DNA of 64,000 nt, taken from contig RHPI01002402.1 in assembly GCA_009103225.1 (NCBI GenBank), forward strand, positions 653,412 to 717,411, written 5' to 3'. A model generated the notes under the pieces. It was not told where the DNA came from and did no database searches. It was given only the letters and a program-made list of their open reading frames with translations. The stretch is from Chlorokybus atmophyticus. Taxonomy: Eukaryota; Plantae; Mesostigma and Chlorokybus algae. A program made the translations under genes and the position numbers. Positions 17,645-27,021 of the stretch are shown in pieces (position 1 is the stretch's first letter; each line of letters begins with the position of its first letter).

Positions 17645-18956
17645 TGCAGGCCTTAGTGGTGTGGTTAAGGTGAATGTCGTCAGCTTGTGCATTGACATTG
17701 TAGGTCAACGTAAAGATTCTTGCTGAACACGTGCTTGCATTGTTAAGGCATAAATGGTAGCATGTACTTGACATGAAGTATACTCTAGTAATGCACTTTG
17801 CAAGCTTGTGCGAACACGTGTTGACTTGCACAATGTTTGCCAATGCGAATCTGATCATCAGACAATGTGCATTGCAACTTTTGTTGATGACACATCAATC
17901 GACACATGTTCAATAATTGGTATGTGCTTTGTACGTGATATGTACGTACGCAAGCAATGAAATGTTTATAACACATGACCCATATGTAAACCATGCAACA
18001 TGTAGTGTCTAGTGTCTGGACTCATAACCCAAGTTGAATGGTTTTGAACACCACGGGTCATGTGTTAATGGCAAATATGTCACATGTGTATATACTTAAT
18101 GTGCATATGCTCCTTGCGCTCTGCAGGTTGTTATTGTTGCGTCTTATTAAGCCTGCTGCCTACTCCCACGTCCTTGATGGTCTAGATTGGTGTCTCGCTG
18201 CCTTAGATTGGTCTGATTGCAAAGGTTTGTCTTGACAGAGCTTGTACAAGCTTGATCCCGCCTCATCTATCATTTGCTTTGTTTGATGATATGTGTGTGT
18301 GCATTTTGCGTGTGTCTACACCTTCGACCCCTTTACGTTTGAGCTTTGATGCGAGTAACACATGGCACAAGCAAATATTATTAATACATGACACGATATT
18401 AGTAAAAGCTCCTCACATACAACGTCTCATTGCATATCTTGTGTATATCGTATTCCCTTGAATACCCCACCCCCCCCCCTCTCCCATTTGACAACCCCCC
18501 TCCAAAATCGGGGGGGGGGGGTAATCCGATAGAATGCGGTAGTCTTTTCGGTAGATTATAAATGTGTATTTCGTACTCGTGCATGTGTGCAACATACACG
18601 AGTGTTGTGGTTGGTTGTGTTGGCGTTAAGGGGAGAATGCTACATTTTGGGTAAGTCTGTCATGTGCTTCATGTTATGCATGTGGTGCATGGTGCATGGC
18701 AACAACTATCTCACACATACATTACTTTGCGTACACACAAGCACGCACGCACTCGCGCGTGCGAGCACCGTATCTATCAATATGTGTGTCATTGTTACCC
18801 ACAACAGCATTTAATGGCATTGTGTGTGGCATGGTAGGAGTGGGAACAAGGTGGGAACAGATACTGCAGGTGGTACGTGTAGTAGCACATAATATGCGCC
18901 ATGCTTGTCATGCACATTGTGGATTGTTGTGTTCAAATTGTATTTATGCATTTGAG

Positions 18957-18959
<3 letters not shown>

Positions 18960-19017
<58 letters not shown>
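18960..19017. repeat. (CT)n microsatellite, about 29 units
   Basis: Perfect CT run read directly. Confidence 0.98.
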
Positions 19018-19019
<2 letters not shown>

Positions 19020-19845
19020 GTGTGCCACGCAGTTATGCATACCGCGATTGACCGCGATTGATATTATTACACACAATCACACGCACACAAAGTACTTTGT
19101 AGGTCATAAACTTCCAGCTATGTTCAATCAAGCTTATATTCCAACATGCTTTGTTGTTACTAAAGTTGTCACATCATCCTAGTAACATTTTATCATCTTA
19201 TTTCGCTCAAGTTGCTTGATAATTGTTTGTAAGCACTCTCAAAACAGAACAAGCTGCAAAGTGCTAATTTCGTCAATGTGAATAGTGTATACATGCCATG
19301 TACATGGCCGAATGTTTCAAACCTATCATTATCAATTTCTCCTCTGTTGTAGATTATTGTCAGACTGTTTGCCCGACATAAGCATGCACTTTTAGCATGT
19401 ATTGTGCTAATAACCGCCGCATGAGTTGTTACGCCTTTCGCCTCTTTATATTGTAAATGGTCCACAATTCTCATTTTTAAGCTGGCCATCATCAATTATC
19501 TTGTGTTTGTGCATTGATTGAAGATTACTAGGCATCTACCCCACATGCAATTGCCAATTGCATGCATGTTTGTAACACGTGACATCATTCATTTTAAATA
19601 AAAAGTTAGGCTATTGTTTGATACGCATTGACACGTTAGCCTGGGCATCACATGGAAATGGAAAACCATTCTTGCATGCATTTGATTCACATGCGTATCG
19701 TAAAATATTACGTCATTAAATCAATGGTGCCATAATTAATTCTAATATGTTAAGTTAACATCCAAGCGCATTCTATAGCTATATAAATGATAGTTACCTT
19801 ACCGCTTTTTATGCCACGTAAATTTGGATCAATTCAAAATCGCTC

Positions 19846-20271
19846 ATGTAACGGGAAGGTACATTAAATAACCACAAATCGACAATAAAAGCACCAAGTC
19901 TTTTATGGTCGAGCGGGCTGTGACATTGGTCATCGGAGCTTGAGACCCGGCTTCAATTCCTGGCTTGCACACGAATTCCGCGGTCGTTGTTTCTCGATCC
20001 AGTAACACCGTAAATGGTCACTTCATAAGTGTCATCATCGATGGGTCGCGACTTGCCTAATGGCAGTCGCGCCGAAATGAGCACTTCAGTCGGAGCGGCA
20101 GGACGCGACCTGACTATCGCGGCGATGCGACTTGTGGGCCAACAAAGACGCGCCTGGCACGCAGTTGACCGGAGGACGTCAGCTTATTTAAGCGGGAAGG
20201 TACATTAATACAAACAAATCGACAAAAAAGCACCATGTCTTTTATGGTCGAGTTGTACCTTCCCGTTACAT
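19846..20271. mobile_element. Putative non-autonomous element bounded by 18-bp perfect inverted repeats
   Basis: ATGTAACGGGAAGGTACA (19846-19863) and its exact reverse complement TGTACCTTCCCGTTACAT (20254-20271); internal imperfect direct repeat of about 65 bp; no TSD seen. Confidence 0.5.
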
Positions 20272-21762
20272 TCCCCCCACTTTTATGGTCGAATGGGCTG
20301 TGACAGCTTAACGATAAGCAGTTTGACTCCTTTGCAATTGCAATGCATATGGATGTTGTAAGCAAATGATATATCGTAATAGCTGCTCATTAATTTCGTA
20401 TATGATTAATCTAATATGTGAGGGTTGGCGATTGGTCGATTGATGACATGTCACTTCTGCGGTTGTAGTTTGGTAATTGAAATGAACACGATTTATATAG
20501 TAATGTTGTAAGGTATGATGTATACACCCTAACATGGTGCACATTGCATATAACATGAAGTCGGATAGGTAATGCATAATCATGCACAGATATGCACACA
20601 CCCACGCATACAATTGCCAAGACAACATGAGCAAGCTCTATTTCACGCATGGTCTAGTTCAGGTGCTCTAAATGTGCTACATGCAAATGCAAGGCGGGCC
20701 AATGAGCAGGCAGCACAATTAATTAATCAACCAACCTGTTGTTACGAAGGCATGTTGGCCCCCCTCTTATCAAAGGGCATTGTGGCCCAAAGTGTGTTAA
20801 CAGTTTGTGAGCAAAAACATGGGCAATCTGAGGTGAATACGGTAGGCCTGTTGTTATAGCTGCCATTCTGCCTCATTGGCCTAACCATTGCAATGCCATT
20901 TCGGCAGGTTGGCGCTTTGAAACCCTTGGGCCGACAGGTTGTGGCGCAGCACATGGGCATGCATGTTGCGAATGGCGCCATGCGTGTGCGAGGCCGTGCC
21001 AATCCACGTGGCGGCCACTTTTGGCGGCAGCGGCCCGCGCATGCAAACTTTGGAGTCCCGCGAAAGCAAGGGGGGAGCGCTGCCAGATTCCAAGTCATGT
21101 CAGCAACGGCTCGGTGCAATGCAAAGGCCGCGCGACGCTGCAATCGACGGTCGCGATGCGACAAAACCAGCAGGCATTGGAATCCTGCTAAACCGAGCAC
21201 TTTTTAGGCCTACTGCGATTCCCTGCCGCAAAAAAACGGAGTTGCTGACCTGCACGGAATCCATCGCCAGCGGGCGGCAGGAATCGCCGCTGCCGTCCAT
21301 TGATGGGGTCATCCGCTATCTCGTCTTCACACTGTTCAATGAACGGTGTTCAGCATGGGAGGCAAAAACCCACCCGCGGTCGGTGCCTTGGCGCTTTATT
21401 CGCAATCCGACAAGCCCGTCGGACGTTCGCCGAAGACCTGGCCCTTTGTTCAGTCCTAACAACGTTAGTGTACCCGCGTATCTTTGTGCAATAATGCAGT
21501 AAATAACGTTCCTTGACAACTTGGACGGCAGATGCTGCGTGGGGCTTTATCAACAAATTGATAAAGTGCCAACTAGGCAAATGCGCCAACTTGGCGCAGG
21601 CGGGCCGATAACGCGGGCGACGGAAGCGGCGGCGAGGGCGTCGTAGTTGTTGGGGAAATCCCCGGCGTCGTCGTAGACGTGTGTATGCGCCTGAGGTGAT
21701 ACTCTGCCGCCGTCGGCAGGTTGGCTGGGCCCCTTGAGAAGTGGCCTGGAGGGAAGCCAGGT

Positions 21763-21771
21763 TTAGGGTTT
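21763..21771 (-). promoter_or_regulatory. Telobox (TTAGGGTTT) with flanking TGGGCC site-II-like motifs
   Basis: Lies about 60 nt upstream of ATG 21829; TGGGCC occurs on both sides. Confidence 0.45.
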
Positions 21772-21828
21772 GGTGGTCTGCCATGGAGCTGGCCTGGGCC
21801 TAAGCCTAGGCCTGGGTGCTATTGGAGC

Positions 21829-24232
21829 ATGGAGCCGGTGCTGAGCAGTAGCCTAGCCGGGGCGCCGTGGCTGCAGACGCGGCCGTCGCTGGACCTTCTG
21901 CGGCAACGGGTTCAGCATGACGGACCATCACGGGCTGTGCACAATGCCCACAGGACTCGGTCCGCTGTGTTGTGCACCCTTGAGATGCCCAGGTATAATG
22001 ACATTTGGAGCATGCCGCACGGTTCACCTTCCCCCCGCCCTCCTCCAAGCACAAAAGCTCCCAAGAAGAAGCTCCCAGAGCGTGCGTATTTTGGTGATTC
22101 GGCTATGCAGGAGCAAGAGGACCAGCACACTCGTCAGGTACGCTAATCTGACTACGAGGGTTTGTCGACACAGTTGTGAGCGTTGCAACCCATTATGAAC
22201 GCTAGGCAGGTAGTTTGCAGTCAGCTGACAGTTGCCTGCATAGGGTTTTGTATTATCTGTTATTTGTCGCAAGGTATTTCTTTCTGTTATATTTTAAGGC
22301 AAGTTGGGCCGAATCTGAGTATGCTATTGCCGTGAGCTGTTTCAGCACTCCACTTGCGCTGCATGTAAACGAGAGCACAGCAACAAAAGATTTCCAGTCG
22401 ATTGCCAGCAAGAATTCACTACTAACGGTGCTTACGGCAGGCAACAAGCGGGCTGGCGACCAGCTCTAGACCGGCAGACCGAGTGAACAGCAGAGGGAGT
22501 TGGGTGGGCGAGGGATATGTGAGATACGTGGAAGACTTGGATGACTTTTTTGCGCTTCCGTCTGTGGAAAAAGAGGCTCCTCCTGGGGAGAAGGAGCATC
22601 GTCGCGATAGACGAAGAATGGACTACAGCTCTGACCTGATAGCAGCGGCAAACGCAGCCACTCAGTTTAGGGAGATGGTGATGGAGGATCTCCGCACCTT
22701 TGTCAGTCATCATGCGATTGCCTTGAGGGGTTACATGCCTACGTGAGTGCCGCAGCCGCATGCATATCAAGATATCGCAGAGCATTCCGTTAGCAACCCT
22801 AACCCAACATGCATTGCATCTTGCAGGCGTGAGTATTTGTGTGATGCGGGTCGGACAGACCTGGTGAGAGCAATACGGCGATTGGGCGGTCCTCTGGTTG
22901 TGGCTACTGCGTTAGGGTTGCGCTGGAGTGCCAACATCATGGATGAAGTCGCCGAGTCAACATCAGGAGTTTGTCCACACCTTCCCACCAGCCATTCCAG
23001 AAGTCGGGGTTCAGGAAGCAAAAAGCCTAGCGTTGGCGCAGTGAAATGTAGAAAGCACACTGCAACAACTTCTGCTGTCAGCTTTACCCCTCAGCACTTT
23101 ACACCACCCACGACAGTGGAGACCATCCTGAGATGTGTGCAGGTATGTGACGCACGATGGTATTGCCACCAGCTGCAACTGTTCTTCTGTTGTGCATGAG
23201 GTGTTGTCGTTTGTGTAGCCTCTTGCTTAGGTGTTTTGCACCGCACCTTCCAACAGCCTGTACATGTTGTAGTGTTGCGGTTTACAACAGAATGTGTCAT
23301 CAACTCCACCTTAACGTGTTTATCTGATACTACTGTGCAGGCGTGCATAGATCAAGGCTTGGTATTCATGGTTGAGCACCATCGCACAATGGGTGCCACG
23401 GATCACTTCTGGACTTTGTGGCGGTTACCCTTGTACAGCGCTCATACAGCTGATGCAGTTATGGTTGAAGCAAAGTAAGTTGCAGGCCATGTATCATTGT
23501 GATGTCTGCCACAAGTTGCAGGGCACATGTATTGGGTAATAAGAAGCTGACACAACCGCATGCTGCAGCTCTTGTGCGGAGCAGTATCCTGACCACTTCG
23601 TCAGGTTAACAGCGTATGACATTGGAAGGCAAGCTCAACAGGTGACTAGCATTTTTTTCTCTCATGCAGATCTGTTGAGAGATATTCGTACCGCAGCATT
23701 TATGCATGCAGTTGCAGGTTCCTGACACAGCAATCTGGTTTAGGTGAGCTACTTGATCCACAAACCAGATGTTATGGATGCAACAGTGGAGGTAGCGGCC
23801 ACCAAGGGTCTCCCTGGCAGCCCTACTACTCCCATGTCACCAGCTATGGCTATCATGGACCAGCAAACCAAATCACGCAAAGATGCTTTGGAGGTATGCT
23901 TCTGGCTCAAAGTCCATACAACCTTGAGGACTGCAAGTTGGCCCTTTGTACACCTGGACCTCCTCACTTGCAACTCAGATAGGATGTTGCTTGTTGAACA
24001 GGCACAGCAGGCGGAACGAAGGAGAGAGGCAGAATCTGCGGCAATTGTGGATGCTGCAGCGTCAACAACTGCCAGAGCTGCAGAGAAATTGGCGTATGAC
24101 TCTGCAGGCAGCCCACCTTCGCCTACGGATGAAAACGGGTTGTACGGCGGCACTATCTTCGCCAACAGGAGGTTGTTGCTGCACGGAAATAAGCAACGAC
24201 GCAAGCGGCGAAGAAATGGACTGCTTCCATGA
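21829..24232 (+). CDS. Putative plastid protein: transit-peptide-like N-terminus, PTST2/3-like helical motif, RbcS-like domain and low-complexity or coiled tail
   Basis: Phase-compatible exons give ...GYMPT|REYLCDAGRTDLVRAIRRLGGPLVVATALGLRW...SAVSFTPQHFTPPTTVETILRCVQ|ACIDQGLVFMVEHHRTMGATDHFWTLWRLPLYSAHTADAVMVEAN|SCAEQYPDHFVRLTAYDIGRQAQQ|VSYLIHKP. This matches the RbcS consensus (WTMWKLP...EY...IR..GFD...Q..SFIVH.P). Confidence 0.8.
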
Positions 24233-25196
24233 GATTGGTGGCAAGGCAACGTTCCAATATCACCAAGTGAGAGTGCTGCAATAAGCTGTCTCCCAAGAAG
24301 ATACAGTTGGCCCGCCACTTTGTACTGTAGGGGGGTTTTGTTGGGTGCCTCCAGGGGTAGGCACACAAAGGAAACCTACCCATAGTTTTGTGTAGTCAGA
24401 TTCTGCATGCAAACGTGACAGCCTGCTGTACGTGCATTACGTACATGAAAGGTGCATGCGTATGTAGGTCATTGCCAGATGCCTGCATGGTTTTATGCAC
24501 GGCCGCTGGGGCACTATACCAAAAGATTTCTTGCAAATTGTATAAGCTGTTGTAAGTCAATGTGAAAGACAAATGTGTGTCGCGTAAAGGTGTGTAGTGC
24601 TCTAGTTTACAGGCATGGTGGAAGGTGAAGTAGTGCTTGTGGCGAGCTTAGCTGCACCGATTGCACAATCCTTGCATACTATAGTATACTACCTGCCAAG
24701 CCCGGCTTGGTAGTCATAGTAGAGTGACTACTGCAGCATGCGCTACCTTAACGCACATAGTGCACAGTGTACGGCTTGTTGAGATGGACCGCAGCATTGT
24801 AGGTACTGATGCCATTGATGCTGACTCGCCTCGACTGGCTCAAGTGACTCAACAAAGAACAAGGTGGAACTGATACTTCGCAGCTGCCTTCTTTGAGAGG
24901 ATGTGCTTACCTGTTCACCTGGCATTTGTGACATAGTGGCCATTGGGTGTAAGTCTGGTGGTGGTCCCCAGCGCCATTGCTCATGCTTGATTTTTTGTTT
25001 GGTTGAGTACAAGCCCATTGGGCGTTGGCAGTTGTGAGTTGCGTAAGAATACGCTAGTCTTCCAGTACTATTCTTGGCTGCCTGCAACCTGCAGCGCCAA
25101 CGTGCAATGCAATGACAATGGTGAATGACCATTCTCATGTAGAGCTATAATATCTGTACAAAGGTGTAGCCATGCATCGAGCTGGAGTAATGCATG

Positions 25197-27021
25197 CTAT
25201 AGCAATGCATCAATGATGTCTTCATCCTCCAGGCCCAACTCCTCAGCAGTCTGACTCGGTTTCAACAGAGCTCCGTCAAAACTAAACCTTGAAGCTTGCA
25301 TGGCTGCACTGCTGTTGTACGCAGCAAATAGCTTGGAAAGCGGATCCGTCTGCGACATGCCACGCAGTTGTCACCCAGCGAGCTGGCTGGTCTTGCTAAA
25401 CGCACACTGTGTGCGCAATCTTCATCATAAAACAACATGCCCACCAGTCTGCTGTCAAGCTTACCGTTCGTATAGAAAACTGCCTGCTGGTCTGGTTGTC
25501 CGCGCAAACTTTGATAATGACCTTCTTGCCACTGTCCACCACAGCATGGACCACATCCTGCGAAGTGAACCCCACCTGCAAGGGCGTCTGGCCAGCTGAA
25601 AGAGGCTGGTCCCTAAATGTGTAAGCAGCCTTCCCGCCGGACCCAAACATCTTCTCGTAGGCCTCCGTGGCTTTTGCAAAATGGTCGCCCTGCACACAAG
25701 CAGACAAGGCCACAGTTGCACACAACAGATCGTACACAACATGCACTGACAAACATGGACACAACACGAGACAAACGCGAACACAATACAGGCACGTCCA
25801 TGTGTTGCTAATGAGCGTTGGTACCATTCTGATCTTGAACTTCTTGCGTCCATGGACACCATCAATTGTCATGATGACTGGTGTGGTGTCCATTGCAGAT
25901 GGCTGCAGGTCTGCTGCAGGGGCAACGCCCGCTCCGCCGCCAGACCGGGCAGGTGCGTCGCAAACCGGAACCTCTGCCAGGGTTGCTCTAAGCAACTCCG
26001 CCGCCTGCTGGTTTCGCCTTCACCCAAAAAAAACGGCAAAACATTTGCACGCAGTTGACATTACAGACACGCTGCGCACAAGGAGCACGCATGCTTAGAT
26101 CCTGACCCACGCACATGCGCACGCACGCACACAGGTAACCTGCACCAGACCTTAGCAGTTCAGCGGCTTCTGGATCCATGTAGGCAGCTGGAGCAGCTAC
26201 AGCGCCTGGGCTCGAGGAGGAGAGGCGCCGTGTTGTTGGTCGCATCCCAACAGGCCCATTCGACTCACCATTGGACACCGGATTCCTATCACTGTCGTAA
26301 GGGGTGTCATCATCATCACCCTTATTGTCATCGTCGTCTCCTCTGCGTCTTGCCTTGGAGGATACGGGAGACCTCTCGGCCTTTGGCGGCCTGCCGCGCT
26401 TCCTCTTCGCTTGCTGAACCTCCAGGGGCGGCGTCAAGCGCAGCTCTTCCGGAATAGGAGGGTCGTCGTCATCTACCAATTGCAACAAACAACACAACAC
26501 AACAGTAAACAAGTAAATTAATGAAAGAGTTGTACATGTGCTTACTCCAGTAACTTCAAGAAACTCCTTGCTGGCAGTGACGAATGGCATAGACTGTACT
26601 ACACGCAAGCAGTAAATTCTCGCACTGAAACTATACCAAGACAACACAGCAACTATACTCACACCAACTAATACTACACAACATCGTCCTGGGTCAAAGC
26701 AGCAACATCTGCTAAAGCTGTCGCGAGAGGCGTCAGGACAAATAGCCACGGAAAGTCAGCTGGCTAGCAGGAAGCTCTCTGCCGACTGTGCTCATCTGTA
26801 AGGACATGCAAGCGCTGGACGCAACTGCTCTTGTGTATACGCCATGCAATCAAGCAACAGGTTGCAGGCATGTTAAAGTGTAAGAGCTTGGCTATGTGCA
26901 TGCAGTGGCAATGAAGACGTGCTGAAACTGTAGCAAGCAGCCGCACCTCACCTTCAAACAGCTCGTTGTTGACCTCGTACTTGAAGAGGCCGAGGTCATC
27001 GTCGTCGTCATCGTCTGCCAT
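25197..27021 (-). CDS. Rad60/Esc2/NFATC2IP-like protein with acidic N-terminus and two C-terminal SUMO-like domains
   Basis: MADDDDDDDLGLF...; SLD1 KKFKIRM|GDHFAKATEAY...FRDQPLSAGQTPLQVG; SLD2 TDPLSKLFAAY...FSFDGALLKPSQTAEELGLEDEDIIDALL*, with no terminal di-Gly. Confidence 0.75.

Follow-up and report, generated by a model that had tools for sequence, protein, structure and literature searches.

Results

A complete RbcS-type domain lies within a larger expressed protein

In the 64,000-nucleotide stretch of Chlorokybus atmophyticus DNA analyzed here (the window; contig RHPI01002402.1, positions 653,412 to 717,411), four short exons had been proposed to join into a domain resembling the Rubisco small subunit (RbcS), raising the questions of whether such a protein is made and what its function might be. 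We found that a complete, divergent RbcS-type domain, split over four exons, is part of a larger expressed, nuclear-encoded protein of this early-diverging green alga. Two spliced transcript contigs from separate studies, X1 (2013; 2101 nt) and X2 (2021; 2109 nt), match the window with 0 mismatches and define a transcribed unit at 21585-24590 (this and all features below are on the + strand) with an mRNA of ~2.1 kb in 7 exons (21585-22137, 22441-22742, 22827-23142, 23341-23474, 23569-23641, 23744-23893 and 24002-24590). All six introns are spliced out in both contigs, and checking of donors and acceptors showed that every joint is GT..AG. The exons of the RbcS-domain region end at 23142, 23474 and 23641 and resume at 23341, 23569 and 23744 in agreeing phases, the three introns between them measuring 198, 94 and 102 nt; three further introns in X1 and X2 occupy 22138-22440, 22743-22826 and 23894-24001. 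The contigs from the two studies join precisely the exons, with canonical and phase-matched GT-AG junctions, that the initial annotation had proposed and left to RNA-level confirmation, and the joined exons give its peptide letter for letter. The longest ORF of the spliced mRNA is a 7-exon coding sequence of 504 aa (21829-24232) that starts at the first in-frame ATG past a stop and ends with a stop codon at 24230-24232; a TGTAA is found at 24551, ~30 nt upstream of the transcript end. Its product is identical to database protein P0001 (jgi/Chlat1/7821/Chrsp66S07265; JGI Chlat1 model 7821). Transcript word depth, a poor measure of abundance, was moderate (30 and 82 vs 245 for the neighbouring gene), lower than might be expected of a stoichiometric Rubisco partner. 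Runs X3 and X4, holding 9-17% of sampled words, gave no match at 95% likeness.

Examination of the 504-aa protein with Pfam placed RuBisCO_small (PF00101) at aa 294-386, where profile positions 5-97 of 97 align at 80.3 bits (E 1e-22). This single stretch was the only Pfam or NCBIfam domain found in the protein. Even exon 4 by itself (44 aa) scores above the PF00101 gathering score (32.1 vs 27 bits). Based on the Pfam match, phmmer against PDB, an AlphaFold2 (AF2) model and Foldseek, the RbcS-like domain spans aa 286-388 (23071-23773; exon parts 23071-23142, 23341-23474, 23569-23641 and 23744-23773). The top PDB matches were cyanobacterial RbcS chains (70-78 bits), that of Nostoc aligning over 94 aa without gaps at 77.8 bits; the end-to-end RbcS alignment claimed earlier is thus borne out over the full profile and against a small subunit of cyanobacterial length. 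AF2 pLDDT is ~80-92 over aa 300-385, and each of the best 50 Foldseek matches was an RbcS chain, TM by target reaching 0.88 at an rmsd of ~2 A (TM 0.75-0.88 to RbcS of 6lrr, 2ybv and 3zxw). As modeled, the domain has the RbcS alpha/beta fold, in which two helices pack on a four-stranded sheet. With ~285 residues ahead of it and 116 after it, the domain lies deep inside a larger protein with a C-terminal tail, as had been noted; it is internal to an ORF unbroken across the spliced exons rather than a free-standing subunit of 100-140 aa.

The invariant blocks of canonical RbcS (E-H after betaA, W-T-L-W-x-L-P, C..P and R...Y-D..R-Q.Q..S....P) are retained in this domain and in that of the single orthologue described below. 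The loop between betaA and betaB (23380-23409) has 10 residues between V-E-H and W-T-L-W, equal to Nostoc RbcS in the gapless alignment, and the extended green-type loop (~20-31 residues) is absent. The N-terminal arm, in canonical RbcS a main contact with the large subunit (RbcL), is degenerate, with HFTPPT in place of SYLPPL. In register with the conserved arm motif E-T-[FL]-S-Y-L-P-P-L, Chlorokybus has H-F-T-P-P-T and the orthologue E-R-F-H-L-Q-P, each retaining a different part, and only 2 of 20 residues of the arm and helix A are identical between the two.

The 504-aa protein holds no internal repeats and its RbcS-like domain is single-copy; therefore the protein would be monovalent unless it self-associates. 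A search of the protein for EPYC1-like repeats found none. The Chlamydomonas-type Rubisco-binding motif W-[RK]-x-x-[LIVA] matched solely within the RbcS core and was not considered meaningful. As the RbcS-like domain occurs once and repeated sticker motifs were not found, a multivalent condensing scaffold is unsupported, and the scaffold first envisaged for this fusion becomes less likely.

The RbcS-like core is paired with a conserved three-helix module

An exhaustive phmmer search with exon 4 against 1.84 billion representatives returned only two real matches, P0001 and P0005; four others (P0002, P0003, P0004 and P0006), which consist of tandem repeats or low-complexity sequence and match in a few residues, were rejected. 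Word-indexed protein searches with the whole protein, with aa 286-395 and with a two-sequence profile recovered, apart from the query protein, the P0005 cluster and a single bacterial RbcS and nothing else. A scan of bacterial and archaeal genomes gave no match. Five loci from a metagenome scan were all GC-rich bacterial rbcS genes and none a family member; L004, the one inspected, lies directly downstream of a 470-codon ORF of rbcL size. Searching AFDB clusters and the ESM Atlas by shape gave RbcS, CcmM and Rca-SSUL but no protein that combines the two modules in this way, and no published description of the RbcS-fusion protein was found in the literature. The search for orthologues, suggested together with the original proposal, yielded one (P0008/L008), in a second green-lineage eukaryote that is GC-rich and was seen in assemblies only, under SRR13221995 / ERZ27237470. 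Like the Chlorokybus protein, this orthologue joins a three-helix module through a disordered linker to an RbcS-like core, both modules falling within one tblastn HSP (E 1.8e-29). The architecture is, to our knowledge, previously undescribed and common to one other green-lineage organism.

Comparison of the two proteins revealed 56% identity in the three-helix module, 53% in the RbcS core and 22-25% elsewhere, along with family-specific signatures common to both (VFMVEHH, TAYD and QQVSY). Because the pairing recurs in a distant organism while linkers and tails have diverged, we conclude that module, linker and RbcS core are under selection. Intron positions differ between the two genes. The very small number of relatives and the disorder predicted for much of the protein could point to an annotation or assembly artefact, or to a decaying, functionless chimeric gene; this explanation, already largely refuted, is extremely improbable given an intact 504-codon ORF in two independent spliced transcripts and 53-56% conservation of the two modules in a distant orthologue whose introns lie elsewhere.

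The conserved module (aa 200-238; 22729-22929, with intron 22743-22826 inside) is helix-turn-helix-like and shares 22 of 39 residues with the orthologue, whose module is modeled by AF2 as three short helices with pLDDT of 76-89. It had no sequence match in Pfam, NCBIfam or PDB, and aa 1-290 and 390-504 matched no Pfam or NCBIfam family. The only language-model lead was PF18780 (HNH_repeat, a homing-endonuclease-associated repeat) with similarity of 0.73-0.81, under the tool's 0.9 reliability line, and hmmscan for it at E up to 10 was empty on aa 198-240 and 150-250. A CdiA chain, the sole PDB sequence match of aa 150-255 (E 0.87), and an Endosulfine match at aa 79-112 (14.5 bits vs a cutoff of 29.8) were attributed to chance. 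The resemblance, in language-model features, to nucleic-acid-associated three-helix repeats would fit a Rubisco biogenesis or quality-control factor, in which an RbcS mimic caps small-subunit sites of unassembled RbcL oligomers and the helix-turn-helix-like module couples them to plastid gene expression or assembly. Retention of the RbcS core motifs is consistent with such a role, and a monovalent, moderately expressed protein is more in keeping with a factor than with a structural component. However, the nucleic-acid link derives from sub-threshold scores and HMMER finds no family, so narrow a distribution would be unexpected for a core role in biogenesis, and we know of no Rubisco assembly factor with an RbcS fold; we regard this explanation as improbable.

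The flanking regions diverge between the orthologues

The N-terminal ~50 aa (21829-21978), a putative transit peptide with charge +3, 18% Ser/Thr and 6% acidic residues, are by composition only compatible with plastid targeting. Further along, a helix predicted by AF2 at aa 156-199 (22597-22728; pLDDT 58-71) shows weak similarity to an upstream exon of the orthologue; an Arg-rich run, the second beside that of the tail, is found at aa 157-162. The linker between the two modules (aa 239-285; 22930-23070) is disordered (pLDDT <50) and rich in Ser/Thr (33%) and basic residues (charge +7); it is 24% identical to that of the orthologue, which is longer and Gln/Pro-rich. Downstream of the RbcS-like domain, AF2 predicts a long helix of 52 residues (aa 411-462; 23840-24103, with intron 23894-24001 inside; pLDDT 81-96) that is Ala-rich and charged, with a heptad score too weak to assert a coiled coil. 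The remaining residues (aa 463-504; 24104-24229) form a disordered basic tail (21% Lys/Arg, charge +7, pLDDT <50) carrying an NLS-like Arg/Lys run. The orthologous ORF ends 8 codons past its RbcS-like domain, without this helix and tail, and the long helix is by this comparison apparently lineage-specific. The absence of the tail from the sole orthologue found weakens the analogy with a C-terminally extended hornwort RbcS that had been drawn.

These regions bear on two other explanations. The NLS-like tail and the second Arg-rich run, together with the decayed RbcL-contacting arm, the helix-turn-helix-like features of the N-terminal module and an N-terminus that, because of its acidic residues, is not a clear transit peptide, might indicate that the RbcS fold was recruited to a role that has nothing to do with Rubisco, perhaps in the nucleus or cytosol. 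This is unlikely, as the basic tail is unconserved and the residues retained in both orthologues are those invariant in RbcL-binding small subunits; nor do we know of any RbcS-fold protein with a non-Rubisco role. Alternatively, the protein could be a genuine small-subunit variant, taking the place of RbcS in L8S8 and cross-linking Rubisco by means of its extensions, a self-contained pyrenoid matrix linker like hornwort RbcS-STAR (Robison et al. 2026), which, according to its description in a review, condenses Rubisco via helical C-terminal extensions (PMC13655443). In agreement with this, the domain is much nearer to RbcS than to the small-subunit-like SSUL domains and its match extends over the full profile, part of the arm included, a 52-residue C-terminal helix is confidently predicted after it, and pyrenoids are present in Chlorokybus (PMC8611356). 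Yet that helix is missing from the orthologue and shows a weak heptad pattern, the arm motif has degenerated and differs between the orthologues, transcript depth is moderate, and the green-type betaA-betaB loop, which lines the solvent channel, is missing (PMC9833052), making a variant subunit of this kind rather improbable.

Discussion

Our tentative prediction, which we put somewhat short of an even chance, is that the protein acts as a monovalent adaptor of Rubisco. Its RbcS-like core would dock on the large subunit, either by occupying a small-subunit site that is vacant or by a derived mode of binding, the latter being considered because the N-terminal arm has decayed. The three-helix module would then connect the docked Rubisco, or an intermediate of RbcL assembly, with another partner, for which a nucleic acid, a membrane or a starch-associated protein are candidates, and the extra C-terminal helix in Chlorokybus may contribute self-association. 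Since the three-helix module is conserved together with the RbcS core, an adaptor is favoured over a matrix linker. Counting against an adaptor are the degenerate arm, which is not conserved between the orthologues, the moderate transcript depth, the NLS-like tail, a three-helix module without a recognised family and a family of only two known members. Chlorokybus has two pyrenoids (PMC8611356), and a Rubisco-organising context therefore exists in this alga; the pyrenoids are of two kinds, starch-sheathed and naked.

A broader proposal, to which we give a small chance, is that the protein is a eukaryotic counterpart of CcmM and RbcS-STAR: an old RbcS paralogue with ancestral short loops, kept in early-diverging green algae, whose three-helix module would anchor Rubisco to a pyrenoid-associated structure or plastid nucleic acid. 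If true, this would be a third independent route to an RbcS-fold Rubisco organiser. Such organisers are known in cyanobacterial carboxysomes (CcmM and Rca-like proteins), and for the earliest-diverging streptophyte algae we know of no pyrenoid component. Since 2026 a hornwort RbcS isoform, as the review describes it, has also been known to act in this way (PMC13655443). The conserved fusion of an RbcS core with a separate small helical module would provide a concrete, clonable candidate for Rubisco tethering or handling in Chlorokybus, its cyanobacterial-length loops bear on the timing of loop expansion in green-type RbcS, and if plant-like Rubisco is bound, it would be of interest for engineering Rubisco condensation into crops.

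Among known RbcS-fold systems, the cyanobacterial small subunits (Nostoc PCC 7120, 6lrr; Thermosynechococcus, 2ybv) resemble the Chlorokybus domain in fold, every loop length and core motifs, with 37-40% identity over 94 aa without gaps. Unlike them, the Chlorokybus domain sits at aa 286-388 of an intron-containing eukaryotic protein of 504 aa, and its SYLPPL arm motif is degenerate; the signatures VFMVEHH, TAYD and QQVSY are specific to the family and shared with the orthologue. The SSUL domains of CcmM and Rubisco-activase-like proteins, which organise Rubisco and bind it at the groove between RbcL dimers with RbcS left in place, likewise carry an RbcS-like fold within a larger protein. However, the CcmM SSUL chains 6hba and 9fwv_A match at only 15.9 and 15.3 bits (E 0.11 and 0.17) vs 77.8 bits for RbcS, SSUL occurs in 3-5 tandem copies as opposed to one, and RbcL-binding motifs missing from SSUL are mostly retained in Chlorokybus, whose protein, in a eukaryotic host, lacks the gamma-carbonic-anhydrase or AAA+ partner domain of SSUL proteins.

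Small subunits of the green lineage (plants, Chlamydomonas) belong to the same domain family and are likewise encoded by nuclear, intron-containing Viridiplantae genes, but they stand alone, score lower than cyanobacterial RbcS (~55-58 bits for plants, 43 bits for Chlamydomonas) and carry betaA-betaB loops of ~22 residues in plants and 20-31 in green algae (PMC9833052). Hornwort RbcS-STAR, as far as its published description allows comparison, shares with the Chlorokybus protein a streptophyte RbcS-type domain, an added helical C-terminal region and a pyrenoid in the organism; by that description alone it is set apart as an otherwise canonical, abundant RbcS isoform, (PMC13655443). In the Chlorokybus protein, by contrast, 285 N-terminal aa that include a separate conserved module precede a divergent RbcS core, and the C-terminal helix is not shared by the orthologue. 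The RbcS polyproteins of Euglena and dinoflagellates, of which Euglena P16881 was among the structure-library matches, also place RbcS domains in a long nuclear-encoded precursor, but their units are tandem, canonical and cleaved apart, whereas the Chlorokybus protein fuses one divergent unit with conserved sequence unrelated to it.

Expression and structure of the gene

The exon boundaries proposed in the initial annotation proved base-exact. The donor sites after 23142, 23474 and 23641 are GTATGT, GTAAGT and GTGACT, respectively, the acceptors CAG, CAG and TAG lie directly before the exon starts at 23341, 23569 and 23744, and joining the pieces in phase gives the identical peptide. RNA evidence agrees: two transcript sequencing runs of separate studies, X1 (2013) and X2 (2021), with 61% of the region's sampled words, yielded a single contig apiece (2101 and 2109 nt, 0 mismatches) in which the same exons are joined and six GT..AG introns, three of them within the RbcS-like domain, are spliced out. 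The spliced contigs define a transcript of seven exons from ~21585 to 24590, with TGTAA, the usual green-algal polyadenylation signal, ~30 nt upstream of its 3' end. Once the introns are removed, the longest ORF (start 21829, stop 24232) encodes 504 aa and equals P0001, the protein jgi/Chlat1/7821 (Chrsp66S07265, EP00898_Chlorokybus_atmophyticus), at every residue. This identity assigns the window to Chlorokybus atmophyticus, a streptophyte alga of an early-diverging lineage. The domain described as hidden is thus real and unseen in the ORF track, but the existing gene model already bears a precomputed PF00101 tag. That the gene is an artefact we consider exceedingly improbable.

The 5' leader is 244 nt long and carries upstream ATGs at 21685 and 21783, which are possible uORFs; the ATG at 21685 is in frame with the main ORF, with a stop codon in between. 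Runs X3 and X4, which share their organism code and study with X2, contained 17% and 9% of the gene region's sampled words and had no matches to it at 95% likeness; they may represent diverged Chlorokybus strains or cryptic species with a related transcript. The downstream neighbour gene on the minus strand (25197-26000) has exon ORFs that by eye are ubiquitin/SUMO-like, with the terminus ...RFSFDGALLKPSQTAEELGLEDEDIIDALL, and its transcript contig, from 24979, reached a depth of 245 in X2. Elsewhere in the window, positions 18000-20000 are low in GC (41.7%) with strong negative AT skew and include a perfect (CT)29 microsatellite at 18960-19017.

The internal domain is an RbcS domain

The match of the internal domain (aa 286-388) to RbcS is beyond chance. 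The whole protein scored 80.3 bits (E 1e-22) against PF00101 over aa 294-386 and profile positions 5-97 of 97, placing it in this domain family; exon 4 alone (44 aa) exceeded the Pfam gathering score (32.1 vs 27 bits), and exon 5 matched profile positions 66-88 in register. Among all PDB sequences the best match was Nostoc RbcS (6lrr, 77.8 bits), followed by Thermosynechococcus 2ybv (71.2 bits) and 8uhi (70.1 bits). All three are cyanobacterial Form IB small subunits and aligned without gaps over ~94 residues, bearing out the end-to-end alignment claimed earlier. Ancestral small subunit reconstructions scored ~63 bits, plants ~55-58, Form IA ~50-53, Chlamydomonas 43, red-type sequences ~26-34, and the SSUL (RbcS-like) modules of CcmM 15.9 and 15.3 (E 0.11 and 0.17). 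The AlphaFold2 model, for which the input alignment had 7 rows, reached pLDDT ~80-92 at aa 300-385, and the best 50 Foldseek matches in the PDB were all RbcS chains (TM by target up to 0.88, rmsd ~2 Å). The betaA-betaB loop is prokaryote-like with 10 residues, compared with ~22 in plants and 20-31 in green algae (PMC9833052).

Outside this domain, P0001 had no Pfam, NCBIfam or PDB sequence matches. AlphaFold predicts aa 48-155 to be mostly disordered and aa 156-199 to form a helix (pLDDT 58-71). With low confidence it models aa 200-248 as helical; aa 249-294 are a disordered basic linker rich in Ser/Thr. Beyond the RbcS fold, the model has a 52-residue C-terminal helix at aa 411-462 (pLDDT 81-96) followed by a disordered basic tail. 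The Arg/Lys run ending this tail looks like a nuclear localisation signal, and the first 50 residues (18% Ser/Thr, net charge +3, sparse acidic residues) are compatible with a putative transit peptide. The C-terminal helix is charged and Ala-rich; we did not call it a coiled coil because its heptad pattern is weak. A sub-threshold Pfam Endosulfine match at 22063-22164 (aa 79-112; 14.5 bits vs a cutoff of 29.8), surrounding K-K-K-L-P-E-R-A-Y-F-G-D-S, is probably due to chance.

A small family with a conserved upstream module

The searched collections contain very few members of this family. When exon 4 was compared exhaustively by phmmer with 1.84 billion cluster representatives, a search in which the 44-aa query needed ~35 bits for detection, the only matches besides P0001 were a single true relative, P0005 (116 aa), and four repeat proteins that are not relatives. 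Word-indexed protein searches, which require shared exact pentapeptides and covered restricted length ranges, added one bacterial RbcS only. Absence of the family from other algae is therefore weakly supported. P0005 derives from a Logan contig (SRR13221995), at whose first base its ORF is still open. Its 90% cluster includes the longer P0008 (238 aa, the last exon only, as called by the metagenome gene caller) on an 18.6-kb contig, L008, of the ENA metagenome assembly ERZ27237470. By its 62.6% G+C, introns, gene content (RPN5, FAM183, RUS (UVB_sens) and MFAP1) and the affinity of its RPN5 fragment, whose nearest clusters are of Streptophyta and Chlorophyta, L008 belongs to a green-lineage eukaryote.

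A single tblastn segment linked aa 202-390 of P0001 to L008 (E 1.8e-29). Two parts of P0008 are conserved, the RbcS-like core and, 90 residues upstream, a stretch that shares 22 of its 39 residues with Chlorokybus aa 200-238. This 39-residue module (22729-22929 in the window; 8019-8130 in L008) shares the pattern P-T-R-x-Y-L, G-R-[ST]-D-L, I-x-R-L-G-G-P, L-G-L-x-W-S, and the orthologue's AlphaFold model folds it as three short helices (pLDDT 76-89). Two further exons upstream, placed by eye with GT..AG borders and matching phases, carry the resemblance on into the helix before the module (F-V...L-[KR]-G), giving a predicted three-exon, 356-aa model, built by eye from the sequence, at L008 7340-8717. 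Identity between the two proteins is 56% in the module, 53% in the RbcS core (aa 315-388), 22-25% in the N-terminal region, helix and linker, and 10% (2/20) in the RbcS arm and helix A (aa 295-314). The RbcS-like domain has no introns in the orthologue vs three in Chlorokybus, and the module-adjacent intron is offset by four codons. The two genes are old orthologues, with no recent transfer between them. The orthologue's ORF stops eight codons past the domain, indicating that the C-terminal helix and basic tail of the Chlorokybus protein are specific to its lineage.

Proposed role

We tentatively propose that P0001 is a monovalent Rubisco adaptor, whose RbcS-like core would keep recognising the Rubisco large subunit (RbcL) and whose N-terminal module would link that core to another partner. 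In support, P0001 is an expressed fusion with a complete RbcS fold, and a small helical module is co-conserved with this fold. Residues invariant across RbcL-binding small subunits are retained in both orthologues; a function not related to Rubisco is unlikely in our estimate. The SYLPPL arm reads H-F-T-P-P-T in Chlorokybus and E-R-F-H-L-Q-P in the orthologue, each keeping a different part of the motif. This apparent decay would speak against a canonical position as a stably bound small subunit and in favour of a derived way of binding, although the domain is far from SSUL in sequence. Chlorokybus has two pyrenoids, one starch-sheathed and one naked (PMC8611356), so a pyrenoid context exists in this alga.

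The scaffold first suggested for this protein is made less likely by its architecture: P0001 contains a single RbcS-like domain and lacks repeated motifs, and the multivalency that a condensing scaffold needs could come only from self-association. The C-terminal helix is the obvious candidate, and through it P0001 could link to itself like RbcS-STAR, described in a review (PMC13655443); because this helix is not conserved, we think such self-linking improbable. By language-model features, 81 of the 100 nearest named Atlas clusters of the module carry PF18780 (HNH_repeat), and the module weakly resembles these homing-endonuclease-associated repeats and unnamed eukaryotic clusters; HMMER gave it no family matches, PF18780 included, leaving it without a Pfam family. 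A biogenesis or quality-control factor capping RbcL intermediates would fit this nucleic-acid-like lead, the moderate transcript depth and the monovalency of P0001, but the lead scores only 0.73-0.81 and lacks an HMMER match, and we regard such a role as doubtful.

Comparison with known systems

Full-text literature searches on green-algal RbcS-like/SSUL proteins, PF00101, RbcS-STAR and Chlorokybus pyrenoids gave no account of P0001, and Rubisco, RbcS and pyrenoids all go unmentioned in the paper on the Chlorokybus genome. Unlike the canonical small subunit, the P0001 domain is not free-standing; unlike green-type RbcS, it lacks the extended betaA-betaB loop; and it differs from SSUL modules in sequence, copy number and partner domains. 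P0001 resembles RbcS-STAR only in that both are RbcS-type proteins of streptophytes that carry an additional helix. P0001 is thus an RbcS-fold module within a larger protein, a kind already known, of which it is itself a new variant.
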